Assembly: GCA_977020255.1 (NCBI GenBank) | Contig: CDROCS010000361.1 | Span: 310,001-374,000 of the forward strand | Reading direction: 5' to 3' | Length of the DNA: 64,000 nt | Source of the DNA: Obrimoposthia wandeli | Taxonomy: Eukaryota | In this document: one piece after another, positions 6,009-40,066 of the stretch | Layout of the letters: each line of letters starts with the position of its first letter | Position numbering within the stretch: the first letter of the stretch is position 1 | The notes under the pieces: model-generated | Databases searched by the model: none | What the model was told of the DNA's origin: nothing | What the model saw: only the letters and a program-made list of their open reading frames with translations | Made by a program: the position numbers and the translations under genes

Positions 6009-7022
6009 ATGAAAAAATTAATAATAATGGCTATGTGTATAGCCACAGGAGTGTCTTTTTCACAAGAAATAGAGGTTAATACTTTAGCAAGACCAGATGG
6101 TCAAACAACAATGATTCATCAATCTACTGGAACACCAGTTCAGGTAGTAAATTGGGTTACTTCTGCAACACCAGACAAAGCTACTTGTGTAGTAGATCAA
6201 ATAACTATTCCAGAAGGTTTCATAAAAGAAAGTAGAAACAAAGTTGCTGTTAGACAATTAGGTGACAGTAATGAAGCAACCGGAATTCAAGAAGGTATGG
6301 GTAATATGTCTTTAATAAGACAAGATAATACTGTTTTTGTACCGGGTCAAGCAGGTAATTTAGCATCTACTGATCAAGCGGGATATCGTAATGGAGCAGA
6401 TATCAAACAATTTGGAGATGGTAATGAGGGTAGAATCTTTCAAGTCGGAGACGATAACTATGCAATTCAAGATGTAGGAGATGATACAGCTATGAATTCT
6501 GAAGGTAATTTTGCTTATGCAAACCAAAGAGGAGATGGAAATAAAACTTCTCAAAAACAACGTTATGATAATAATTCTGCAACAGCGTTGACTTGGGGTG
6601 ATAGAAATACTATCGTTCAAGATCAGACTAGTGGACCAAATCATTCTACTGGAAGTGTTGCTTTTGCTGATCAATTTGGAGATGACAACTCTGCTCAACA
6701 AGTACAAGTAGGTTCTAATAACTCTGCATCACTTTATCAAACAGGAGATAACAATATATCTGTAGAAACTCAAACTATGGTTGGTGATTTTGAAGAATTT
6801 ACAAATATGTCTACAGTTAATCAGGTAGGTGATAGCAATACATCATGTGTAACTCAATATGCTAATGTGTCTAGAAACAGTAGTTGTGTAAACCAAATGG
6901 GTGATAATAACTCAAGTTTAGTTAATCAAACAGCTGCTGAAGGATTCAAAAATGCTTCATGTATACAACAAACAGGTAATTTGAATACTGCTCAAGTAAG
7001 TCAAACAAATGTTATTGAATAA
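6009..7022 (+). CDS. csgA: Curlin-repeat amyloid protein, probable major subunit (CsgA-like)
   Basis: Signal peptide; ~20 half-repeats of N-x-A/S-x-x-x-Q-x-G-D-x-N; first gene of a csgE/F/G cluster. Confidence 0.85.
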   Translation: MKKLIIMAMCIATGVSFSQEIEVNTLARPDGQTTMIHQSTGTPVQVVNWVTSATPDKATCVVDQITIPEGFIKESRNKVAVRQLGDSNEATGIQEGMGNMSLIRQDNTVFVPGQAGNLASTDQAGYRNGADIKQFGDGNEGRIFQVGDDNYAIQDVGDDTAMNSEGNFAYANQRGDGNKTSQKQRYDNNSATALTWGDRNTIVQDQTSGPNHSTGSVAFADQFGDDNSAQQVQVGSNNSASLYQTGDNNISVETQTMVGDFEEFTNMSTVNQVGDSNTSCVTQYANVSRNSSCVNQMGDNNSSLVNQTAAEGFKNASCIQQTGNLNTAQVSQTNVIE

Positions 7023-7538: not shown

Positions 7539-8264
7539 ATGAAAAATAAAATTATAATTTTATTTATTTTAAATATTTTTTTTACATCCTTTTATTATGC
7601 TCAAGAGTTTGGTGTCTATAATGTTAAAGGGAAGATTAATTTAACTCAAATTGATGATTTTTTAACTTTAAGAGCTCAGGTTCTAAACGAAGAATTATTC
7701 TTTATAAACGATCTTAGTTACCTTTTTGTAGTACTTAAAAAAGGGGGGGCTGGGAATTTATCAAAAAATAATCAATCTAATGAATTTTCATTGAAGCCAA
7801 ATGAAGAGAAACAGTTGTCTACAATTAAAATCAATTTAAAAAAAGAGGAAGAATTAAGAGTATACTTATTTATAAAATACAAAGGTAAATTAATACATAG
7901 AGATACCTTATTTCTCTTGTCAAATGGAAAAGTTCCGGTGAAGAAAGCGGTAAATGAAGAACAGTATCTAATTAGAGGTATCGTTATAGATGAAGCAATA
8001 ACGAAGATAGGTAAAGATTATCATGATTTTTTTTACAAAGAATATTTAGTTACAGGAAAAAATTATCCTTTTATCATAAAGATCGTTGAAAAACCAGCAA
8101 TGGGAAGGAGTAGTATTATATCAATAGAAGTTGATAGAAAAAAAATTCATGAGTTCTTTGCGAGGCCAGAAGAAGATTATTTAAAAACGAATGTTGTATT
8201 AGCTATGAGAAAATTAAGAGCATATGACCAACAAAGGAAAACTACTTTTCAAAATAAATTTTAG
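7539..8264 (+). CDS. csgE: Curli assembly protein: CsgH-like N-terminal domain plus CsgE domain
   Basis: C-terminal GIVIDEAITKIGKDYHDFFY...IKIVEKP...IEVD is CsgE-like; N-terminal Y.F.V.KKGGAGNLSKNNQSNEFSL resembles CsgH. Confidence 0.7.
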   Translation: MKNKIIILFILNIFFTSFYYAQEFGVYNVKGKINLTQIDDFLTLRAQVLNEELFFINDLSYLFVVLKKGGAGNLSKNNQSNEFSLKPNEEKQLSTIKINLKKEEELRVYLFIKYKGKLIHRDTLFLLSNGKVPVKKAVNEEQYLIRGIVIDEAITKIGKDYHDFFYKEYLVTGKNYPFIIKIVEKPAMGRSSIISIEVDRKKIHEFFARPEEDYLKTNVVLAMRKLRAYDQQRKTTFQNKF

Positions 8265-11663: not shown

Positions 11664-12842
11664 ATGAGTCAAGAAGTTTCAAAAAGATACGCACAAAGAG
11701 GCGTTTCTGCATCAAAAGAAGATGTTCACAATGCAATTAAGAATATAGACAAAGGTTTATTTCCAAAAGCATTTTGTAAAATTGTGCCAGATTACTTAAC
11801 AAATGATGATGATTATTGTTTAATCATGCACGCAGATGGCGCAGGTACAAAATCTTCTTTAGCATATATGTATTGGAAAGAAACAGGAGATATTTCTGTT
11901 TGGAAAGGCATTGCTCAAGATGCTTTAATCATGAATATTGACGATTTACTTTGTGTTGGTGCAACAGATAATATCATGTTATCTTCTACAATTGGTAGAA
12001 ACAAAAGTAAAATTCCTGGTGAAGTTTTATCAGCAATTATAAACGGTACAGAAGAATTAATCGAAGACTTAAAAGGTTTTGGAGTTACCATTCATTCAAC
12101 CGGAGGAGAAACGGCAGATGTTGGCGATTTAGTACGTACAATTATTGTAGACTCTACAGTAACTGCAAGAATGAAACGTACAGATGTTGTTGACAACGCA
12201 AACATAAAAGCAGGTGATGTAATTGTTGGTTTAGAATCTTTTGGACAAGCAAGTTACGAAACTGAATATAATGGAGGAATGGGTTCTAACGGATTAACGT
12301 CTGCAAGACACGATGTTTTTCATAAATATTTAGCAGAAAAATACCCAGAAAGTTTTGATGCTGCAGTTCCTGAAGATTTAGTGTATTCTGGTAATACAAA
12401 ACTGACTGATAAAGTAGAAAATTCTCCTATTGATGCAGGTAAATTAGTCTTATCGCCAACAAGAACCTACGCGCCAATAATTAAGAAAATCTTATCAGAA
12501 TTTAATTCAGAAACGGTACATGGAATGATTCATTGTTCTGGTGGTGCACAAACAAAAATATTACATTTTGTAGATAATTTACATATTGTAAAAGACAATA
12601 TGTTTCCAATTCCGCCATTATTTAAATTGATACAAGAGCAATCGAATACAGATTGGAAAGAAATGTACCAAGTTTTTAATTGTGGACATAGAATGGAAAT
12701 TTATGTTTCTCCAGAAATTGCAGCAGACATTATTAAAATTTCTAAATCTTTTAATGTGGATGCTAAAATTGTAGGTAGGGTAGAAGCTTCACCAACTAAA
12801 AAATTGACGATTACAAGTGAGTTTGGTGCCTTTGAATATTAA
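11664..12842 (+). CDS. purM: Phosphoribosylformylglycinamidine cyclo-ligase (AIR synthase)
   Basis: MHADGAGTKS, MNIDDLLCVGA, GGETADVGD, GSNGLTSARH, HCSGGAQTK, FNCGHRME. Confidence 0.9.
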   Translation: MSQEVSKRYAQRGVSASKEDVHNAIKNIDKGLFPKAFCKIVPDYLTNDDDYCLIMHADGAGTKSSLAYMYWKETGDISVWKGIAQDALIMNIDDLLCVGATDNIMLSSTIGRNKSKIPGEVLSAIINGTEELIEDLKGFGVTIHSTGGETADVGDLVRTIIVDSTVTARMKRTDVVDNANIKAGDVIVGLESFGQASYETEYNGGMGSNGLTSARHDVFHKYLAEKYPESFDAAVPEDLVYSGNTKLTDKVENSPIDAGKLVLSPTRTYAPIIKKILSEFNSETVHGMIHCSGGAQTKILHFVDNLHIVKDNMFPIPPLFKLIQEQSNTDWKEMYQVFNCGHRMEIYVSPEIAADIIKISKSFNVDAKIVGRVEASPTKKLTITSEFGAFEY

Positions 12843-12864
12843 GAGCAAGACATATTAAATCATA

Positions 12865-12902
12865 AAAAACTCCAAATACTTTTAAAAGTATTTGGAGTTT
12901 TT
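12865..12902. terminator. Perfect 38 bp palindrome, bidirectional terminator (copy 1 of a repeated family)
   Basis: aaaaactccaaatactttt|aaaagtatttggagttttt. Confidence 0.8.
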
Positions 12903-12960
12903 GGTTTATGATGTTTAAGTTTTTTCTTGTTTTAGCTCAGTTATTTGTTGGTAAAAGGAT

Positions 12961-13278
12961 TTATTTAGTTCGTTTTATTTTGGGTGGATTTTGTCTAGTG
13001 TCAAAAACATCCGCAATTTTTATAAAACCATTCTCATTATCTACCGAGTAAATCAGTTTGTAATTTTTATGGACTAAATACCTGTAGTCAATTTTTCTTT
13101 GGTTTAATAATTCTTCACTTTGTCCGATTAGTGATGACTTTACTAATTTTTCAGGCTCATTAATAATACCTTTTACAAGTTTTGTAGCTATTCTTGCGCT
13201 TGCCTTTTTTTCGTAATATTTATAAATTTCGTCAAGTTGAGTTTCTGCAAAATGAGACCATATGACTTTAAATATCAT
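12961..13278 (-). CDS. RelE/ParE family toxin
   Basis: 105 aa; VIWSHFAETQLDEIYKYY...YRYLVHKNYKLIY...IADVFDTRQNP. Confidence 0.85.
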   Translation of the reverse strand: MIFKVIWSHFAETQLDEIYKYYEKKASARIATKLVKGIINEPEKLVKSSLIGQSEELLNQRKIDYRYLVHKNYKLIYSVDNENGFIKIADVFDTRQNPPKIKRTK

Positions 13279-13511: not shown

Positions 13512-13592
13512 TTTACACTACTTTTTATCAAAGATATAAAATTATCAATTTAGCTGATGTTTTTCTAGAATTGACTGCTTTTTATAAGATTT

Positions 13593-13657
13593 TTTCCAAT
13601 TCCGCCATTATTTAAATTGATACAAGAGCAATCGAATACAGATTGGAAAGAAATGTA
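13593..13657 (+). repeat. 65 bp exact duplicate of an internal purM segment (12603-12667)
   Basis: tttccaattccgccattatttaaattgatacaagagcaatcgaatacagattggaaagaaatgta identical at both positions (offset 990). Confidence 0.92.
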
Positions 13658-13665
13658 TAAAGAAT

Positions 13666-13721
13666 TTATTTCGTTCGTTTTATTTTAGGTGGATTTTGTC
13701 GAGTGTTAAAAATAGCTGCAA
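13666..13721 (-). pseudogene. 3' remnant of a second RelE/ParE toxin gene
   Basis: Encodes ..VAAIFNTRQNPPKIKRTK*; ~86% identical to 12961-13016. Confidence 0.8.
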
Positions 13722-13733
13722 CTGTCATTTGGT

Positions 13734-14657
13734 TTATGAGATTGTATCTAAATTTATTTCCCAGATTATAATAGTTCTATCGTCGCCTGCAGAAATTAAA
13801 TAATTATTGTAGGTACTCCAAATTAATTTATTTACAGAAAATAAGTGTCCATCATATTTTTCTTTGTCAATCACTTTTAATAATTGAAATGTTTTCGAAT
13901 CCCAAATTTTTAATGTTTTGTCACGACTAGCCGTAGCAAATAAGTTAGAGTTTGGGCTGTATGCAATATCATAAATTGCCCAATCATGAGCGGGAATTGA
14001 TTCTATTTTCTCATAATGCCCAACTTGCCAGATGTTCAAATAACCATCTCTACCTCCTGTTAAAAGGAATTTTCCATCAGGACTGAAGCGCACAACATTT
14101 GACGAAATTTGATGTCCAATAAAGACCTTTTTTTCCTGTAATGTTTTTAGGTCAAAAATACGAATGTTGCAATCTCCTGAAGCAACCGCTATTTCTGAAG
14201 TCTTATAATTAAAATCGATATCTCGTACTTTTTCATTACAGAGTTTTTTAATCTTGATTAAGGCAAAAGTGTCAAGCGAGCAAATTGCAAAGTTACCGTC
14301 TCCACCAGCTGTATAAATGCAATTGGTTTCAATAGAATATCTAATATTAAAAATCTGAGAAGTATGGTTTTTTAGAATTTTTATTTCTTCGTTCTTTTCT
14401 AAATCTAATATATGAACATTGCCATTTGAAGTTCCTGCGAGTAATAATTGTTTTTCGGGAATGTGACAAATAGAATATAAAGCGGAAGGATAGCTATCTA
14501 TGAGTTTTTTGTCTTTAAATGTTTCTAAATTCCATTGAGCGATTATCTTATCGCCGCCACCAGAGAAAATAAGATGTTCAGCGATTCCTTTATCTAAAGT
14601 ATATATTGAGTCGCTATGACCTGTGAGTGTCGCTATTTTATTTACCTCAATTCTCAT
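13734..14657 (-). CDS. WD40 repeat protein
   Basis: About 7 GH...WD-type repeats (GHSDSIYTL, GHQISSNVVRFSPDG, AHDWAIYDIAYSPN, SAGDDRTIIIWE). Confidence 0.88.
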   Translation of the reverse strand: MRIEVNKIATLTGHSDSIYTLDKGIAEHLIFSGGGDKIIAQWNLETFKDKKLIDSYPSALYSICHIPEKQLLLAGTSNGNVHILDLEKNEEIKILKNHTSQIFNIRYSIETNCIYTAGGDGNFAICSLDTFALIKIKKLCNEKVRDIDFNYKTSEIAVASGDCNIRIFDLKTLQEKKVFIGHQISSNVVRFSPDGKFLLTGGRDGYLNIWQVGHYEKIESIPAHDWAIYDIAYSPNSNLFATASRDKTLKIWDSKTFQLLKVIDKEKYDGHLFSVNKLIWSTYNNYLISAGDDRTIIIWEINLDTIS

Positions 14658-14752: not shown

Positions 14753-14854
14753 TACTAATTCCAAAAATTAGAATAAAAACGTTTCTTATTCCAATTTATA
14801 GCGACTATAAAAGTACAATAAAAGAAGGGATTTGTTTTATTGTTTTCCGTAGTT
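14753..14854. repeat. ~100 bp diverged copy of the array head region at 17227-17327
   Basis: Hand alignment ~80% identity (agaataaaaac, tataaaagtacaa, ccgtagtt blocks). Confidence 0.8.
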
Positions 14855-14903
14855 AGATAAAAGTGCTTTTTGTTAAAGTTTCTATATAAAGTACTATTGA
14901 TTA

Positions 14904-14934
14904 CAAATACTTTTAAAAGTATTTGGAGTTTTTT
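14904..14934. repeat. Truncated copy 2 of the purM-terminator palindrome
   Basis: caaatacttttaaaagtatttggagtttttt. Confidence 0.8.
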
Positions 14935-14997
14935 ATTTTGGGAACTAAGGATATCAGAAGTTTACAAATGAGTAATTAACTTTTGGTTTTAGTCAAC

Positions 14998-15660: not shown

Positions 15661-15691
15661 AAAATACTTTTAAAAGTGTTTGGAGTTTTTT
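15661..15691. repeat. Degenerate copy 3 of the purM-terminator palindrome
   Basis: aaaatacttttaaaagtgtttggagtttttt. Confidence 0.75.
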
Positions 15692-15710
15692 GTTGCTTAA
15701 TTTTAGTTTT

Positions 15711-15852
15711 GTTTAACGGTTTTTGGTATGTTTTGTAGCGTGTTTTAAGCAACTAATTTACTAAATAAAACGCTAGCGTAGAAAATCCGTGAGGATTTTC
15801 GTAAATGTGCTAGAACCAAGCTATAAATTATACGCATTGTTGCCTGTAGTTT
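15711..15852 (-). mobile_element. attC-like imperfect hairpin ending the parD-parE cassette
   Basis: Minus strand ...ACAGGCAAC (just after the toxin stop) to GTTAAAC (GTTRRRY); imperfect outer arms and inner hairpin aaaatcc-gtga-ggatttt. Confidence 0.65.
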
Positions 15853-15853
15853 T

Positions 15854-16153
15854 TTATTCTAATATTCGTTTTTTTAAATCCATTCTTTCGTGTAGAATCC
15901 TTGTGATTTCAACATAGTTTTCCGTAGTTGTTCTGTAGAAAATTATATGTCGATTTGTTTTCATACCGAATAAGTTTTGAGTAATTCCATTATAGTTTTT
16001 CCCTAAATTCGGATTATCTGCAATTTCTTGACAATTAGAAATAAGCATTTCATAATATTTATCAGCTTGTTTTTCTGACCAAACTTCAAAGGTGTAGTCC
16101 CAAATTTTTGACAAATCTTCAACAGCTTTGTTAGTAAATTCGTATTTAGCCAT
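15854..16153 (-). CDS. parE: ParE family toxin
   Basis: YEFTNKAVEDLSKIWDYT...WSEKQADKY...HIIFYR...EITRILHERMD. Confidence 0.88.
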   Translation of the reverse strand: MAKYEFTNKAVEDLSKIWDYTFEVWSEKQADKYYEMLISNCQEIADNPNLGKNYNGITQNLFGMKTNRHIIFYRTTTENYVEITRILHERMDLKKRILE

Positions 16154-16397
16154 TTGAAAGTTTCTTTGCTTTTAGAGATTCAAGATGTTTTTTAGGATTA
16201 AAGTCGTGTGCAATTCCACTTTCAATTCCTTCATTAATAGAATTTTTCAAAGCAATAACTTTACTTTCTTCCTCCTCTAAAAGTCTTAATCCTGCACGAA
16301 TAACTTCACTAACATTTTTAAACCTTCCTTCAGTTATGCTGCTTTTGACAAATTGGTCAAAATAATTTCCGAGTGATATTGATGTGTTTTTGTTCAT
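16146..16397 (-). CDS. parD: ParD1-type ribbon-helix-helix antitoxin
   Basis: NTSISLGNYFDQFV...GRFKNVSEVIRAGLRLLEE...INEGIESG; overlaps parE by 8 nt. Confidence 0.88.
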   Translation of the reverse strand: MNKNTSISLGNYFDQFVKSSITEGRFKNVSEVIRAGLRLLEEEESKVIALKNSINEGIESGIAHDFNPKKHLESLKAKKLSNG

Positions 16398-16412
16398 TTT
16401 CAATATATTTCT

Positions 16413-16435
16413 TCAAATATACCAATAATTGGTAT
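16413..16435 (-). promoter_or_regulatory. parD-parE promoter with palindromic operator
   Basis: TATATTTG -7 box (16420-16413) overlapped by palindrome ataccaataattggtat (16419-16435). Confidence 0.65.
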
Positions 16436-16450
16436 AATAACCAAATTCTC

Positions 16451-16597
16451 AAATTACTGGCAACGTGTTTGTGTAATGAAAGTTGCGATTTTTGTGAACG
16501 GCTATTTTCCGCAGGAAAATTGTTGTTTGCAAAAATGCAACTGCTTTTAGTTAAGCACTAATTTAGCAATTTTTTTTACACGGTGTTAGCAACTGTT
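16451..16597 (-). mobile_element. attC-like imperfect hairpin between the two cassettes
   Basis: Minus strand GTTGC-TAA-C overlaps the ORF stop; ends GTTGCCAG; nested arms gtgtaa..ttgc, gttgc..aaaaat and central ttttcc-gca-ggaaaa. Confidence 0.7.
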
Positions 16598-17194
16598 TTT
16601 TATTATTTCAATTAATAATCCAATACTCAAAATGTTAATAATTATAATAAAAATTAATGTTCCTATATTTTCAAGTAAGAAAAGAATTAGAGAAAATTTA
16701 TTCTCAGGTTTTTTTATTTTTCCTTCACCTCTTTTAAGTTTAAAAAAAAGTTTTTCAACTTCATAAAAGTCAGTCTCACTCAAACTCATTAGTTCAATTT
16801 TTTCGGAGTTTTTCAGCGAGATTGTAGTTTTGTAATTATAGAACAAATATCCTTTCTCAAACATATTCACTCCTGGATAAATTCTTGTTTTTTCTTCAGT
16901 TTGCTTTATGGTTTTTATTTCTTCAAACTTTAGATTAGCTTTTTGAGGAAGTAAATATTTTTTTATTTCTATTCCATTTTCAGAGATTTTCAATATTCTG
17001 ATTTTAATTAATAGATATAAACATAAAATAGAAAATAAAGCGAAAATTGCTGCAAAGCAGTAACCAATGATTTTATTTTCCCCAGTTGAAACTTGAATAC
17101 AAAAAAGTGTAAATACAAAACTGAATAAGAAACCTGAGAAAAGTCCGCCAGAAAGAATTAATCTTGGTTTAGTTTTATATAAAATTTCATTCAT
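16586..17194 (-). CDS. Hypothetical membrane protein (cassette cargo)
   Basis: Two N-terminal TM helices, PH-like soluble middle region, C-terminal TM; low GC; ATG 17194 (TTG 17203 possible). Confidence 0.65.
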   Translation of the reverse strand: MNEILYKTKPRLILSGGLFSGFLFSFVFTLFCIQVSTGENKIIGYCFAAIFALFSILCLYLLIKIRILKISENGIEIKKYLLPQKANLKFEEIKTIKQTEEKTRIYPGVNMFEKGYLFYNYKTTISLKNSEKIELMSLSETDFYEVEKLFFKLKRGEGKIKKPENKFSLILFLLENIGTLIFIIIINILSIGLLIEIIKNSC

Positions 17195-17224
17195 TTTCTT
17201 CAATCGTAATTTTCGTCCTAAATA

Positions 17225-17392
17225 GTTGCTAACTCCATGTATCAGAATAAAAACTTTTCATATCCCGATTCATAGCGCTTATAAAAGTACAACAATAGAA
17301 GTGATTCTTTTACGGTTTCCCGTAGTTTAAAATGTGGTTTTCCGCAGGTCTAAAAAATAGGCGTTATTTAGTGTTTTTTCGTAGTTTGATAA
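17225..17392 (-). mobile_element. Head site of the cassette array (attI-like or degenerate attC)
   Basis: G|TTAGCAAC crossover motif at 17233-17225; three direct repeats TTT(T/C)(T/C)CG(T/C)AG(T/G)T upstream; -7-like TActTTTA. Confidence 0.45.
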
Positions 17393-17643
17393 GTTATTTA
17401 TTTCTATGCACAAAAGCAAAAATCAATTTTAAATTGCTGATATTTAGAAACTTCATTTTATCCGAATAGAATTCAATAAAAATAAATTATTTGTTAACTT
17501 TTTGGTGTTCATAAGTTTTTATGTAATTAATTACCAGTCTCTTAACGCTTTTTTCTTGAAACTTTATGACTTTTGTCATCTTTTAGGTTGTATATTTGCG
17601 TGATATTTATTTCCGAAAAAACATCTTAACTACAAAAATAATA

Positions 17644-20196
17644 ATGAAATCTGAAACTGTAATTACTCCTCGAAAAACATATTCTAGAGACGAAGCTTTA
17701 AAAGCAGCTCTTAACTACTTTAAAGGCGATGAATTAGCTGCAAGTGTGTGGTTAAATAAATATGCTTTAAAAGATTCTTCCGACAATATTTATGAAAGCA
17801 CTCCTAATGAAATGCATACAAGAATTGCATCAGAAATTGCTAGAGTAGAGCAGCGATATGAAAACCCATTAACAGAATCAGAAATTTTTGATGCTATTAA
17901 AGATTTTAAATACATCGTTCCTCAAGGAAGTCCAATGGCAGGTATTGGTAATCCTTTTCAGATTGCATCTTTATCTAATTGTTTTGTAATTGGTAACAAT
18001 GGTGAGTCTGATTCTTATGGAGGAATCATGAAAATAGACCAAGAGCAGGTTCAGTTAATGAAACGTAGAGGTGGTGTTGGTCATGATTTATCTCATATTC
18101 GTCCAAAAGGATCTCCAGTAAAAAATTCAGCATTAACATCTACAGGTATTGTTCCTTTTATGGAGCGTTACTCAAACTCAACAAGAGAGGTTGCACAAGA
18201 TGGTAGAAGAGGTGCTTTAATGTTGTCTGTTTCTATCAATCATCCAGATGCAGAAGATTTTATAGATGCAAAATTAGAGCAAGGTAAAGTTACAGGTGCA
18301 AATGTTTCTGTAAGAATTGATGATGAATTTATGAAAGCCGTTAAGGCAAATGATAAGTACACACAAAAATATCCTATAAACAGTGAAAACCCTGTTTATA
18401 CGAAAGAAATAGAAGCAAATAAAATTTGGAATAAAATTGTACACAATGCATGGAAATCTGCAGAGCCAGGAATTTTATTCTGGGATACAATTATTAACGA
18501 ATCTGTGCCAGATTGTTATGCAGATTTAGGCTATAAAACGGTTTCTACAAACCCTTGTGGTGAGATTCCTTTATGTCCTTATGATTCTTGTCGTTTATTA
18601 GCAATTAACTTGTTTTCTTATGTAGAAAATCCTTTTACAAAAGAAGCAGAATTCAATTTTGAATTATTTAAAAAGCATATTGTTATTGCGCAAAGAATGA
18701 TGGATGACATCATTGATTTAGAATTAGAAAAAATTGATGCAATTATTGCAAAGATAGATTCTGACCCAGAGGAAGATGATGTAAAAGCAACGGAAAGAAA
18801 TCTTTGGGCTAATATTAAACATAAAGCAGACGAAGGTAGAAGAACAGGTATTGGTATTACTGCAGAAGGAGATATGTTAGCTGCTTTAGGAATTCGTTAC
18901 GGAAGTGAAGAAGGAAATACTTTTTCTACAGAAGTGCATAAAGTATTAGGTATAGAAACGTATAGAGCATCAGTAAATTTAGCAAAAGAAAGAGGCGCAT
19001 TCGCAATTTTTGATGCAGATAGAGAAAAGAATAATCCGTTTATTTTAAGAATTAAAGAAGCAGATCCAGAGTTGTATTACAACATGTTAGAACATGGACG
19101 TAGAAATATTGCTTTGTTAACAATTGCGCCAACAGGAACTACGAGTTTAATGACGCAAACTTCATCTGGAATTGAGCCTGTATTTATGCCTGTTTATAAG
19201 CGTAGAAAAAAGGTGAATCCTAATGATAAAGGAACAAGAGTAGATTTTGTTGATGAATTAGGAGATTCTTGGGAAGAATATGTTGTTTTTCACCACCGTT
19301 TTAAACAATGGATGGAGGTAAATAATATAGATTCTAGTAAGAATTTTTCTCAAGAAGAAATTGATGAATTGGTAAAACAATCGCCATATTATAAAGCTAC
19401 TTCTAATGATATTGATTGGGATAGTAAAGTAAAAATGCAAGGAGCTATTCAAAAATGGGTAGATCATTCTATTAGTGTAACGGTTAATTTACCGAATGAT
19501 GCAACAGAAGAATTGGTTGGTGAATTGTATTTAAAAGCTTGGGAAGTTGGTTGTAAAGGAGTCACTGTTTATAGAGATGGTTCTCGCTCTGGTGTTTTAA
19601 TTTCTGCGGATGAAAAGAAAGAGGATTCTGACAAAGAAGAAAAAGTTTTTCCTAATAAAAGACCACAAGTTTTAGAAGCAGATGTTGTTCGTTTTCAGAA
19701 TAGTAAAGAAAAATGGATTGCTTTTATCGGTTTGGTAGATGGTAAACCTTATGAAATTTTTACAGGATTAGCAGATGATGAAGATGGAATTTTAATTCCT
19801 CGTTGGGCAGAAAGCGGTGTAATCATTAAAAGTAAAAATGAAGACGGAACAACGCGTTACGATTTTCAATATGAAAATAGAAGAGGTTACAAAACAACGA
19901 TTGAAGGGTTGTCTCATAAATTTAACCCTGAATTTTGGAACTATGCAAAATTAATTTCAGGTACCATGCGTCATGGAATGCCAATTGATAAAACGATAGA
20001 GCTAATTAGCAGTTTACAGTTAGATAGTGCGTTTATCAATTCTTGGAAAAATGGTGTTGCTCGTGCATTAAAACGTTACGTTACAGATGGTACAAAAGCA
20101 AAAGGACATACTTGTGATAACTGCGATTCTGGTAATTTAATTTATCAAGAAGGTTGTTTAACATGTAAAGATTGTGGTTCTTCTAAATGTGGATAA
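17644..20196 (+). CDS. nrdJ: Class II adenosylcobalamin-dependent ribonucleotide reductase
   Basis: SLSNCFV, STNPCGEIPL, IAPTGTTS, KGVTVYRDGSR, C-terminal TSCPD/Zn ribbon (CDNC..EGCLTCKDCGSSKCG); TATATTTG -7 box at 17591-98. Confidence 0.93.
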   Translation: MKSETVITPRKTYSRDEALKAALNYFKGDELAASVWLNKYALKDSSDNIYESTPNEMHTRIASEIARVEQRYENPLTESEIFDAIKDFKYIVPQGSPMAGIGNPFQIASLSNCFVIGNNGESDSYGGIMKIDQEQVQLMKRRGGVGHDLSHIRPKGSPVKNSALTSTGIVPFMERYSNSTREVAQDGRRGALMLSVSINHPDAEDFIDAKLEQGKVTGANVSVRIDDEFMKAVKANDKYTQKYPINSENPVYTKEIEANKIWNKIVHNAWKSAEPGILFWDTIINESVPDCYADLGYKTVSTNPCGEIPLCPYDSCRLLAINLFSYVENPFTKEAEFNFELFKKHIVIAQRMMDDIIDLELEKIDAIIAKIDSDPEEDDVKATERNLWANIKHKADEGRRTGIGITAEGDMLAALGIRYGSEEGNTFSTEVHKVLGIETYRASVNLAKERGAFAIFDADREKNNPFILRIKEADPELYYNMLEHGRRNIALLTIAPTGTTSLMTQTSSGIEPVFMPVYKRRKKVNPNDKGTRVDFVDELGDSWEEYVVFHHRFKQWMEVNNIDSSKNFSQEEIDELVKQSPYYKATSNDIDWDSKVKMQGAIQKWVDHSISVTVNLPNDATEELVGELYLKAWEVGCKGVTVYRDGSRSGVLISADEKKEDSDKEEKVFPNKRPQVLEADVVRFQNSKEKWIAFIGLVDGKPYEIFTGLADDEDGILIPRWAESGVIIKSKNEDGTTRYDFQYENRRGYKTTIEGLSHKFNPEFWNYAKLISGTMRHGMPIDKTIELISSLQLDSAFINSWKNGVARALKRYVTDGTKAKGHTCDNCDSGNLIYQEGCLTCKDCGSSKCG

Positions 20197-29395: not shown

Positions 29396-31801
29396 TTATT
29401 TACCTAATAAATGTAACTCGTTAAATTCTTTATCTATAAGTATAGACTGTGTTTTACCTTCGTTTATATTGTCTATTGATATTTCTACATTATCTATTTG
29501 AACGGAAGTAATAGAGAACGGTAAATTATGGAAGACAATATTAAACTTGCTATAATCTGCGTTAAAGTCTCCACGTTTGTGTTGTTGGATAATGATTTCC
29601 TCTTTTTTACCTGTTACTTTAAAAGTACGTAAACTAAATCTTCCTTTTTTATAATCATAACCATCATGAGCATCATCATATAGTTTTGAAGATTCTTTAC
29701 CCTCTTTATAATAAACATCTAAAGTGATATCATCAAATTTCTTTTCACCAACATATTGTTGTACAGGATATTTAGGAATAACAGCACCTTCTTTAATAAA
29801 GATTGGCATACTGTCTAATTCAGCATCTACCCACATTTCTTTTCCTCCTTCTACTAATTCATCAGTCCAGAAATTATACCATTTACCTTTAGGAACATAC
29901 ATACGTCTCCCTTTTGCATTAGGTTCTTGTATAGGACAAACTAAAATTTGCTCTCCATAAACAAACTCATCACTTCTGTAATGTGTTGCTGTATCTTCTT
30001 GATCGTATAATACTAAAGATTTTAAAATTGGTGTTCCATCATTTATATAATTCCAAAAAGCGGTATATAAATATGGTAATAATTGGTATCTAAGTTCAAC
30101 GAATTTTCTTACAATATCTGTAACTTCATCACCAAAAACCCAAGGTTCTTGATCTCCGTGATCTCCAGAAGAATGTACTCTACAAAAAGCGTGAAAAACT
30201 CCTAATTGTATCCAACGTGTAAATAATTCTCCTTGTGGTTGTTCTGCAAAACCACCAATATCAGATCCTGCAAAAGAAAAACCAGACATCGCCATTCTTT
30301 GAGCTTGGTTATTTGCAATTGCTAAATGTTCCCAAGTTGCAACGTTATCTCCCATCCAAGTAGATGTATAACGTTGTGCTCCAGAATAAGCAGATCTTGT
30401 AATTACAAAAGGTCTTTTTGGATATGCGTATTTCTTTAAACCATGATAGGTTGCACGTGCCATTTGAGTTCCATAAATATTGTGTGCTTTTCTATGAGAA
30501 CAAGGATTTCCATCATAATCATGACGAACATCGTCTGGGAAAGATTTGTTAGGAACGTCCATTACAGCTGGCTCATTCATATCATTCCACACTCCTTTTA
30601 CACCAATATCTTCAATTAATTCTTTAAATAAACCTGACCACCATTCTCTAACTTCTGGTTTTGTATAATCTGGGAAATAACATTCACCAGGCCAAACTTT
30701 ACCTTTCATATAAGGCCCATCTGCACGTTTACAGAAGTAATCTTTATCTAAACCTTCTTTAAAAACATCGTATTCTAAATCTATTTTAATTCCCGGATCT
30801 ATAATTACAACGGTTTTAAAACCATCATCTTCTAGTTCTTTTACCATTCTTTTAGGATCAGGAAAATATTCCTTATCCCAAGTAAAGCAACGGAAACCAT
30901 CCATGTAATCAATATCTAAATAAATAGCATCACAAGGAATTTTTAAATCTCTAAATGTATTTGTAACCTCTTTTACGTTAGCTTCTGGGTAATAAGACCA
31001 TTTACATTGGTGAAACCCTAAAGCCCATAATGGAGGTAAAGCATGAGGCTTACCTGTTAAATCTGTATAGTTTTTTACAACATCTTCCATTTGTGGGCCA
31101 TAAATGAAATAATAGTTCATTTCACCACCTTGCGCCCAAAAACTTGTTACATTTCTTCTTTCATGTGCAAAATCAAAAGAAGTTTTAAATGTATTGTCAA
31201 AAAATATACCGTAAGATTTTTTGTCTTGTATAGCTGTATAGAAAGGAATTGCTTTATAAATAGGATCGGTATCTTTACCAAAAGCATAAGAATCTGTTGC
31301 CCAGTTTTCAAAACGCTTTCCTTTTAAGTTTACATCTACAGGCTTATCTCCTAAACCATAAAAACTTTCTGACTTCTGGCAAGCTTTACTCATTTTTACG
31401 ATGTCTCCACCATATTCATAACTTTCTTCCCAGTGAAAACCAATTTCGTCTTGGTTTATAAGTTTTAAATCTACAGCATCAAATAAACTTACTTGTAAAC
31501 TAAGTTTTTCTACTTTACAAATTAATTTAGAAGTAGTAATAATGTAATGAGTTTCGTTTTCAGTTACATCTAAAAAGCTATAACCTCTACTTGCATGAAT
31601 GGTAACTCCGTAAGAAAAATCATTTTCAAATTTTCCTGTTGTGCTATATCTAAAACGAATAACACTGTCTCTTACAACTGTAACTTGTAATACAACATTA
31701 TTTTTAGTTGTAAAGGAAAGTGTATCTACATCCTTTTTATAATTTATAATTTCTGAAGGAAATAAATTCCCTTTTTGTTCTAACTCTGTATTAACAATCA
31801 T
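29396..31801 (-). CDS. GH31 alpha-glucosidase
   Basis: LDIDYMD, GVWNDMNEP nucleophile, TWMGDN acid/base, SDIGGF, RWIQLGVFHAFCRVHS. Confidence 0.92.
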   Translation of the reverse strand: MIVNTELEQKGNLFPSEIINYKKDVDTLSFTTKNNVVLQVTVVRDSVIRFRYSTTGKFENDFSYGVTIHASRGYSFLDVTENETHYIITTSKLICKVEKLSLQVSLFDAVDLKLINQDEIGFHWEESYEYGGDIVKMSKACQKSESFYGLGDKPVDVNLKGKRFENWATDSYAFGKDTDPIYKAIPFYTAIQDKKSYGIFFDNTFKTSFDFAHERRNVTSFWAQGGEMNYYFIYGPQMEDVVKNYTDLTGKPHALPPLWALGFHQCKWSYYPEANVKEVTNTFRDLKIPCDAIYLDIDYMDGFRCFTWDKEYFPDPKRMVKELEDDGFKTVVIIDPGIKIDLEYDVFKEGLDKDYFCKRADGPYMKGKVWPGECYFPDYTKPEVREWWSGLFKELIEDIGVKGVWNDMNEPAVMDVPNKSFPDDVRHDYDGNPCSHRKAHNIYGTQMARATYHGLKKYAYPKRPFVITRSAYSGAQRYTSTWMGDNVATWEHLAIANNQAQRMAMSGFSFAGSDIGGFAEQPQGELFTRWIQLGVFHAFCRVHSSGDHGDQEPWVFGDEVTDIVRKFVELRYQLLPYLYTAFWNYINDGTPILKSLVLYDQEDTATHYRSDEFVYGEQILVCPIQEPNAKGRRMYVPKGKWYNFWTDELVEGGKEMWVDAELDSMPIFIKEGAVIPKYPVQQYVGEKKFDDITLDVYYKEGKESSKLYDDAHDGYDYKKGRFSLRTFKVTGKKEEIIIQQHKRGDFNADYSKFNIVFHNLPFSITSVQIDNVEISIDNINEGKTQSILIDKEFNELHLLGK

Positions 31802-38860: not shown

Positions 38861-40066
38861 TTATTTTTTTAATGTTTTATATAATTCTTCTACTTGTTTT
38901 GCTATTGAAATCCAATCAAAATAATCTTCAACTCGTTTACGACCTTTTTGAGCCATTGATTTTCTTAATTCTGGATTGTTAATAACATTATTTACTCCAT
39001 CTGCTAAATCTCTTGAAAACTTATCAGGATCGATAGGCTCAAAAGGAGCAGAGTCTTGTTGCTGAACAGGAATTAAAAGGCCTGTTTCTCCATGAACTAC
39101 AACTTCTTTAATACCACCAACAGCACTTGCAACAACAGCTGTGTCACAAGCCATTGCTTCGATATTGATAATACCAAAAGGTTCATAAATTGATGGACAA
39201 CAAAAAACATCAGCATGTGAATACAACTGAATTATTTCTTTTTTTGTAACCATTTTATCAATCCAGATTACATTTTTGCGAGTCTTTTTTACTTCGTTAA
39301 CGGCATCTTCCATTTCTTTACCTATTTCAGGTGTGTCAGGAGCACCAGCACAAAGAACTATTTGAGTTTCTGGATCTATATATTTTATTGCATTTACTAA
39401 ATGAATAATTCCTTTTTGCCTTGTAATTCTACCAACAAAAAGTACATAAGGTTTATTTTTATCTACACCATATTCATCTAGAGTAGACGTTTCTGGGGTG
39501 GTAATGTATTCTTGTAAGTTGATACCATTATAGATTACTTTAATTTTACTTTCATCAACATCAAAATGTTTTAATACATCTTGTTTTGTTTCTTCAGAAA
39601 CAGCAATCAATGCATCAGCCATTTCAATAGCTGTTTTTTCAATCCAAGAAGAAGCATCATAACCACGCCCTAATTGTTCTCTTTTCCAAGGTCGCAAAGG
39701 TTCTAAAGAATGTGTTGTAATTACTAAAGGTATACCATAACAAAGTTTTGCTACAATACCTGCAAAATGAGAGTACCATGTGTGACAATGAATAATATCA
39801 GCATCTATAGGTTCTGCATTCATATGTAACCCTGTACTTAAAGTTTTAAAGATGGCTTTAAGTTTGTCGTCTGAGTTATCGAAAATCGGATTTTCAAAAG
39901 GAAATCCTTTTACAGTTGGGTTATCGTTAGAAACATCTTGATCTCCAAAGCATCTAACATCAACTTTCATAAGTTTGGCTAATTCCGCAGCAAGATATTC
40001 GACATGAACACCAGCTCCTCCATAAACATATGGGGGGAATTCTCTAGTATAAAAAAGGGCTTTCAT
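38861..40066 (-). CDS. glgA: GT4 glycogen synthase, GlgM-type (maltose-1-phosphate synthase-like)
   Basis: TREFPPYVYGGAGVHV, HTWYS, HSLEPLRPWKREQLGRGY, FVGRITRQKG, PSIYEPFGIINIEAMAC. Confidence 0.88.
   Translation of the reverse strand: MKALFYTREFPPYVYGGAGVHVEYLAAELAKLMKVDVRCFGDQDVSNDNPTVKGFPFENPIFDNSDDKLKAIFKTLSTGLHMNAEPIDADIIHCHTWYSHFAGIVAKLCYGIPLVITTHSLEPLRPWKREQLGRGYDASSWIEKTAIEMADALIAVSEETKQDVLKHFDVDESKIKVIYNGINLQEYITTPETSTLDEYGVDKNKPYVLFVGRITRQKGIIHLVNAIKYIDPETQIVLCAGAPDTPEIGKEMEDAVNEVKKTRKNVIWIDKMVTKKEIIQLYSHADVFCCPSIYEPFGIINIEAMACDTAVVASAVGGIKEVVVHGETGLLIPVQQQDSAPFEPIDPDKFSRDLADGVNNVINNPELRKSMAQKGRKRVEDYFDWISIAKQVEELYKTLKK

Follow-up and report, generated by a model that had tools for sequence, protein, structure and literature searches.

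Which process placed two minus-strand gene modules directly upstream of nrdJ in a 64,000-nt stretch of DNA deposited under Obrimoposthia wandeli (assembly GCA_977020255.1, contig CDROCS010000361.1, positions 310,001 to 374,000; hereafter the window)? An initial annotation had read the modules as gene cassettes of an integron-like array in a flavobacterium, ended by attC-like hairpins and serviced by an unlinked tyrosine recombinase. The source genome is sampled here through this 64-kb window, which we compared with related loci from metagenomes, genomes and phages. We conclude that the window very probably holds an integrase-less array of two cassettes, resembling a cluster of attC sites lacking an integron integrase (CALIN), and that this array belongs to an integron-like system of Flavobacteriaceae. 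The system is widespread in marine flavobacteria and their phages. Its cassette unit consists of an open reading frame (ORF) or ORF pair together with a hairpin site of ~125 nt from AAC to GTT; the cassette begins TT-N7-A-TT right after the G of the previous site and closes with the complement of its start, followed by AAC.

Integrons are thought to depend on a single protein innovation, an extra domain of the integrase IntI which reads extrahelical bases of the folded attC site. With few exceptions, Bacteroidota are considered to lack integrons or to have them only rarely. RefSeq surveys found Bacteroidetes with only In0 and, later, one complete integron in Salinibacter, and reviews count Bacteroidota among the integron-bearing phyla. 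In the full-text literature outside subscription journals we found no paper on the hairpin family described here or on a linkage of recombinase and array in Flavobacteriaceae; an earlier description is possible.

Two probable cassettes upstream of nrdJ

On re-examination the coordinates first given for both modules proved exact. Cassette A (16464..17232, minus strand) comprises a membrane ORF of 205 amino acids (aa; 16586-17203), for which Pfam gave no match, and its own attC-like site (hpA, 16462..16598, minus strand) made up of an R'' extension with AAC (16585-16598), conserved arms and the GTT at 16462-16464. On the minus strand it starts G(17233)|TT AGCAACT A TT, and its distal site reads AACAGTTGCT-AAC, with the AAC at 16585-16587. 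The reverse complement of this end is GTT AGCAACT G TT, and the start is complementary to the cassette's own distal end at 12 of 13 positions; the membrane ORF ends in a TAA that overlaps with the R'' end of the site. Cassette B (15717..16463, minus strand) carries a toxin-antitoxin pair, parD (16146-16403) and parE (15854-16153), and its own site (hpB, 15715..15852, minus strand; R'' extension with AAC 15839-15852, GTT 15715-15717). It starts G(16464)|TT GCCAGTA A TTT and ends AAACTACAGGC-AAC (AAC at 15839-15841; reverse complement GTT GCCTGTA G TTT), a complementarity of 12/14. The G|TT starts, the end matches and the stop overlap had all been recorded in the initial annotation and were reproduced here; its parD-parE assignment agrees with Pfam (ParD_antitoxin, 2e-23; ParE_toxin, 4e-17).

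Sites A and B are 747 nt apart; the definition of a CALIN asks for at least two sites within 4 kb and no integrase nearby. When all 64 kb of the window were scanned for start/end pairs of the cassette form, A, B and three scattered matches came up, where shuffled sequence gives ~2. What sets A and B apart from this background is that they lie next to each other in the same orientation, up against the two hairpins. Folding both ~140-nt stretches as single-stranded DNA, a check proposed at the outset, had a mixed outcome: they fold better than shuffled sequences, though only moderately (z -1.1 to -3.05, the last value for the plus strand of site A), and this would be unconvincing alone. Since the folding energies are modest, the case rests on comparison with other copies.

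A hairpin family in marine flavobacteria

Such copies are numerous, and the scan counts for metagenomes and genomes are lower bounds. A conserved 23-nt arm motif, CAACAAYGYGTATAATTWATWGC, turned up in 37 IMG/VR contigs and in no fewer than 120 stretches of marine metagenomes, and a family profile built from 68 compact copies located 371 copies in 161 of 238 sources (2.3 Mb). In every multi-copy locus all elements are co-oriented; the largest arrays hold 19 copies in 14.8 kb (L116), 13 copies (L198) and 10 copies each (L104 and L083). 3'-end anchors were located for 198 of the 371 copies, and the span from AAC to GTT is 120-130 nt in 168 of 175 anchored copies. Site B matches the family profile with an nhmmer E of 1e-19 and has relatives in L013, L003 and more than 80 metagenome loci. 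Hairpin A represents a diverged subfamily which the profile missed; it was placed by blastn (relatives in L163, L130, L183, L125 and L099) and by alignment with this element subfamily, in which its L stem shows double compensatory changes.

Across an alignment of 92 sequences the AAC and GTT are invariant, and in the consensus fold xAAC pairs with GTTx. The bottom strand forms a 16-bp stem, GTGTATGGTTAGTTGC / GCAATTAATTATACAC; compensatory changes are found in 10 of the 17 consensus pairs. The unpaired spacer between the two stems is asymmetric: 6-7 nt separate them along one arm, 4 nt along the other. In 69 of 71 sites the bottom strand is the more stably folding of the two strands, and bottom-strand G.T wobbles are conserved, one consensus pair being G.T in 86 of 92 sequences and never G-C. 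A function in RNA, as a 3'-untranslated or antisense element that stabilises or regulates the upstream gene with cassette mobility being secondary, might be read from these wobbles, which are G.U-compatible and conserved on one strand, and from the covarying stem. In phage copies, moreover, a small ORF starts inside the element on the wobble-conserving strand. However, the better-folding strand is antisense to the cassette genes, and neither gathering nor permissive thresholds in Rfam, which holds no attC family, gave a family match for the hairpins. An RNA element would also leave unexplained both the complementarity of cassette ends across 400-3700 nt and the variation from GTT beside a recombinase gene described below. 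We therefore judge it highly improbable.

Cassette ends and contents

The initial annotation had made its proposal depend on whether end complementarity generalises, and it does. In 112 other, complete cassettes between consecutive elements, the 12 nt that follow the upstream GTT were compared with the 12 nt that precede the downstream AAC, read as reverse complement. On average the two ends of one cassette agree at 8.19/12 positions (n=112); the value is 4.43/12 when both flanks of one element in situ are compared, and 4.26/12 when pairs are drawn at random from different loci. A typical cassette starts GTT-N7-A-TTT and its reverse-complemented end reads GTT-N7-G-TTT, N7 being cassette-specific; A occupies position 8 in 98% of starts, with C as the partner in 74%. 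Cassettes A and B agree with this general pattern base for base. The complementarity of a cassette to its own end is the integron cassette signature: it is the expected product of inserting a circle with one complete site, and the opposite of what repeat insertion into a palindromic target would leave. With this layout an excised circle would hold one site with a perfect R stem of 10-13 bp, and sites in an array have mismatched outer ends. Reconstituted circle-junction sites fold at -24.2 kcal/mol, compared with -19.8 for sites in situ in arrays.

The same comparison bears on a family of repetitive extragenic palindromes (REP) or miniature inverted-repeat transposable elements (MITE), or of transcription terminators, that spreads alone between genes which are not themselves mobile units. 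A highly conserved palindromic element of ~125 nt between genes at many chromosomal loci would suit this explanation, as would its use as a target by an IS110-family insertion sequence (IS). Yet the flanks of an element resemble each other at random level, gene-module ends being the complementary ones; no target-site duplications were seen, and within a locus every copy has the orientation of the genes. That the end complementarity is an artefact of paralogous gene ends is opposed by the 112 cassettes, nearly all of which are unique. The concern, raised at the outset, that the hairpins could be MITE ends is thus dispelled, and we regard a repeat that spreads by itself as extremely improbable.

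In their properties the cassettes resemble those of integrons: their median length is 715 bp, in 100 of the 112 the longest ORF is co-oriented with the site, and nearly all are unique. Orthologous cassettes shared between loci amount to only two pairs, too few to map the crossover at attC x attC junctions. The parDE cassette of the window has an 84.6% identical copy in L198 (5367-6019), inside the array of 13 elements. The homology starts right after N7 and stops at N7'; the N7 themselves differ and are nevertheless self-complementary (GCCAGTA/GCCTGTA in the window, GTGTGTA/GTGTGTA in L198). The variable parts of the flanking elements are unrelated in the two contexts, so that the same module sits between unrelated elements, which also speaks against a repeat spreading alone. 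As a side observation, four tandem paralogous cassettes occupy 1088-4627 of L111 and encode proteins of ~240-255 aa starting MIKFFRKIRQNLL; this protein family recurs as cassettes in L197, L185, L161, L168, L140, L124 and L089.

A recombinase gene at the array heads

If these are cassettes, which enzyme moves them? In complete platforms the array starts ~35-45 nt after the stop of a co-oriented gene for a Xer/IntI-like tyrosine recombinase of ~400 aa. In several loci a conserved stretch of ~60 nt leads up to the first cassette and is laid out as an ORF end (...LLS[RG]x*), the spacer and ATATAAC[ACT]A|GTT; the attI-like head junction reads ...ATATAACNA|GTT. The same head was found in L240, L239, L134, L117, L180, L155, L102, L152, L090 and L105, and 8-9 heads also share the 3' end of the recombinase gene. 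At many heads the gene has decayed to this 3' remnant and the neighbourhoods vary; in L134 the head ORF is a 100-aa C-terminal fragment co-oriented with the array. Full-length relatives have 380-410 aa, ending ...SPLD...LLLSRN; in all there are more than 4346 relatives, the named ones coming from Lutibacter, Psychroflexus and unclassified Flavobacteriaceae. Directly after intact recombinase genes follow the head and then a cassette, as in L240, where the encoded protein has 396 aa (...GATATAACCA|GTT GTGCCTA A TTG..ATG). In the isolate Lutibacter agarilyticus DSM 29150 (GCA_900188235.1, contig FZNT01000006.1, 260178-277930) the recombinase gene occurs together with a head copy and at least 7 end-matched cassettes, whose sites represent three subfamilies. 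As a cultured strain with a complete platform it makes the system directly testable.

Otherwise identical strains diverge exactly from the head GTT onwards, the cassette-precise variation in relatives that the initial annotation had called for. Four assemblies (L243-L246), which stem from different samples, share 11.2 kb of identical sequence that takes in the recombinase gene and runs up to ...GGATATAACAAGTT; beyond the common GTT they hold three different cassettes (GTGCGTA.., AGCAAAC.., ATCGGCA..). An apparent divergence of L243 and L244 at the 5' arm of the site was discarded, as the alignment shows a 3-nt indel and the site is common to both until an IS110-family insertion in L243. Contigs of 120 kb and 187 kb stop 14-68 nt past the recombinase stop codon, as expected if the population is heterogeneous from there.

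The head recombinase aligns end to end with XerA (5HXY, 2e-40) and also with XerD, whereas its alignment with VchIntIA (2A3V) is split, 66 IntI residues (182-247) standing opposite 23. Judged from these alignments, the IntI-specific insertion is absent. In NCBIfam the XerA/integron-integrase model XerA_Arch scores 215-233 bits, and TIGR02249 reaches 190-227 bits in two stretches, below its cut-off of 265. The N-terminal ~100 residues have no Pfam match.

These results bear on a classical integron with ordinary attC sites, in which a canonical IntI with the extra domain would be encoded at another locus, the Xer-like head recombinase being a mere bystander. In their AAC...GTT triplets, the length of the hairpin, the layout of the array and the complementarity of cassette ends the loci are all attC-like, and integrons have been reported in Bacteroidota. 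Still, the one recombinase gene found at the heads encodes a protein without the IntI insertion that falls short of the cut-off for integron integrases, the 3' end of this gene is present in all 8-9 heads, and the canonical R-box consensus is rarely met (RYYYAAC in 10 of 313 sites, GTTRRRY in 10 of 195, i.e. 3-5%), its place being taken by the cassette-specific N7 followed by a conserved A opposite C. A classical integron is accordingly unlikely. A further possibility would be integrative mobile elements exploiting Xer (IMEX), in which the housekeeping chromosome-dimer resolvase recombines a folded site as a mimic of dif, as in CTX phage. XerA, XerC and XerD are the best full-length sequence matches of the head recombinase, and folded single-strand recombination is a known Xer-related mode; the geometry of CTX attP (folded arm, unpaired spacer, second arm) is common to the hairpin sites. 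In contrast to a housekeeping resolvase, however, the head recombinase gene is accessory, linked to arrays and often decayed to a 3' remnant amid varied neighbourhoods, and the protein has an N-terminal extension of ~100 aa. No dif-like 28-bp site was identified, nor does a dif site appear to be involved. We consider exploitation of the housekeeping Xer system very unlikely.

Two other genes were seen just upstream of the array head in L155. One (179-1885) encodes a 568-aa protein whose N-terminus looks serine-recombinase-like by eye, and the other (2061-2588) a minimal tyrosine recombinase of 175 aa with the catalytic domain only. The latter was considered as kin of the head recombinase and rejected: jackhmmer seeded with it gave no relatives, and it belongs to a different family.

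An integron-like but not a canonical system

Like sedentary chromosomal integrons and CALINs, of which the Vibrio cholerae superintegron with its VCR attC sites is an example, the flavobacterial loci consist of co-oriented, mostly single-ORF cassettes separated by imperfect hairpins of ~125 nt bounded by AAC...GTT, each cassette having a start that is complementary to the distal site of the same cassette. Both kinds of system also include toxin-antitoxin cassettes, an attI-like site adjoining a tyrosine recombinase gene and strain variation from GTT onwards. The sites fall within the 57-141 nt from AAC to GTT by which integron hairpins are recognised, and integrase-less arrays are dispersed in the chromosome as CALINs are. 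The recombinase is co-directional with the cassettes, as in the 'inverted-integrase' integrons of Treponema, Chlorobi and others. In those integrons the 3' end of the integrase gene abuts attI. They possess an IntI with the extra domain, however, which the flavobacterial recombinase lacks. Unlike sedentary integrons, the flavobacterial system combines this lack with the ~100-aa N-terminal extension, an asymmetric spacer (6-7 vs 4 nt) and no conserved extrahelical bases seen; its R stem has 10-13 bp with a conserved mismatch at position 8, where integrons have 7 bp of RYYYAAC/GTTRRRY. Its hosts are Flavobacteriaceae, a clade without complete integrons in the RefSeq surveys.

Several points weigh against reading the window as such an array. 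The head junction (17233..17245, minus strand), ...CTGATACATGGA G|TT, which would be the insertion point of the array just upstream of nrdJ, is only weakly like the attI-like core GATATAACNA|GTT, and the head profile gave no significant match there (E = 3.9). As stated in the initial annotation, no integrase lies in the window: an iterative hidden Markov model search seeded with XerD found no tyrosine recombinase among window ORFs of at least 90 aa. The variable part of the downstream site is not common to the orthologous parDE cassettes, which a strict model of the cassette carrying its attC does not predict unless sites were later exchanged. The data place the crossover no more precisely than within GTT or directly behind it. 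Finally, the 16-bp L stem is continuous, with no conserved extrahelical bases or bulge seen in the 92-sequence alignment, and the recombinase is without the IntI insertion that binds such bases, so that mechanistic identity with IntI is not assured. Because of the missing insertion and the non-consensus R box, the flavobacterial system operates in the manner of an integron without being a canonical one. What was first proposed as integron- or CALIN-like therefore holds for the architecture and the array signature, and needs amending for the recombinase and for an R box of 10-13 bp that departs from RYYYAAC/GTTRRRY.

For the CALIN-like array of the window we propose that a recombinase of the head type, encoded elsewhere in the source genome, would act on the sites in trans; an unlinked tyrosine recombinase servicing the array is plausible. 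It would excise cassettes as circles with one complete site each and insert them at the attI-like site or at other sites. By analogy with IntI at attC, single strands might be exchanged at the AAC/GTT triplet of the folded bottom strand. The window cassettes could have been inserted at a secondary site upstream of nrdJ, or they could be the remnant of a longer array, possibly stabilised by the ParDE pair. At the tail junction (15705..15716, minus strand), G|TT AAACAAA A CT may represent the right-hand half either of the target as it was before insertion or of a cassette since lost; the start/end-pair scan of the 64-kb window found no matching cassette end downstream.

Going one step further, we are slightly inclined to regard the system as a separate class of integron, with a Xer-like recombinase lacking the IntI domain and with folded single-stranded sites whose R stem is long and specific to the cassette. 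It would be widespread among marine Flavobacteriaceae, with cassettes also in lytic flavobacterial phages. If so, hairpin-based cassette capture would have evolved more than once or would predate the IntI domain. Such a system could account for the large, strain-variable accessory gene pool of abundant marine flavobacteria and for assembly breaks at these loci. It would also link the flavobacterial cassette pool to phages, which in a separate class would be a vehicle for cassette exchange.

Phage copies and IS insertions

The cultured lytic Polaribacter phage P12002L (L247) contains at least 4 elements of the family (14500-14633, 31108-31321, 39123-39251 and 39506-39715). Its gp56 is a cassette of 265 nt with matching ends (GTT GTAAGTA A TTAAAG vs GTT GTACGTA G TTAAAG). 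Phage contigs have a longer form of the element, 170-200 nt, which encloses the start of a small opposite-strand ORF and in which the conserved arm encodes AINYT[RH]CC. In blastn against cultured phages the compact element matched nothing; only the longer phage form gave a match, in P12002L. attC sites have been reported for this phage (PMC9892861). We considered whether they are the same elements; they are different, shorter sequences, and that paper does not cover the hairpin family.

Some hairpin sites are themselves interrupted. In L243 an IS110/IS1111-family transposase gene (11954-12814; DEDD_Tnp_IS110 and Transposase_20) lies at the end of the 3' arm of the site, and the same IS end, GTATTCCAAGAT.AAATCCTAATA, interrupts the site in L089 near 871 in minus orientation. 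These insertions parallel the IS1111-attC elements of classical integrons.

The purM-nrdJ interval

In the window, purM (11664-12842, plus strand) and nrdJ (17596-20196, plus strand), which encodes a B12-dependent class II ribonucleotide reductase, enclose only minus-strand modules. The window purM is 97% identical to purM of metagenome-assembled genomes (MAGs) of uncultured Polaribacter. The adjacency of the two genes is kept in many Flavobacteriaceae, with gaps of ~170 bp to 2.7 kb and unrelated gene content; the 4.75 kb of the window is the longest gap seen. Among 80 loci, hairpin B is the sole interval sequence with a relative, apart from a fragment of purM and the ~130 nt upstream of nrdJ. 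Its counterparts lie in Algibacter (L013) and in a Polaribacter MAG (L003), and each of the two immediately follows a co-oriented ORF. Upstream of nrdJ (17233-17595), neither gathering nor permissive Rfam thresholds revealed a cobalamin riboswitch or other family. The other minus-strand modules, namely a second ParE pair, a WD40 gene and a 204-aa ORF, were also considered as cassettes and set aside, as they have no cassette-type ends.

A number of repeats mark the interval. Directly after purM (12862-12902) there is a perfect, terminator-like palindrome of 19+19 nt. It has two partial direct copies of ~30 nt (14904-14936 and 15662-15701), which flank the segment containing the second ParE pair and WD40 gene, as well as the 204-aa ORF, an arrangement that looks like insertion of these blocks at the hairpin. 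An 88-nt internal fragment of purM (13584-13671) is 85-95% identical to purM of other genera, and beside it lies an 84% identical copy (13659-13728) of the 3' end of the ParE gene (12954-13023); both look like scars of earlier rearrangement or of foreign DNA. The ~100-nt leader between cassette A and nrdJ (17229-17392) is duplicated at 80% identity upstream of the WD40 gene (14755-14860), and the plus strand between 14843 and 17347 has five copies of the motif TTTYCCGYAG, with 0.8 expected in the whole window. A duplication is also found in the Polaribacter MAG L003, where the last ~45 nt of purM (6213-6257) recur (8197-8243) beyond an inserted gene for a 597-aa secreted protein, followed by a family element and a membrane ORF.

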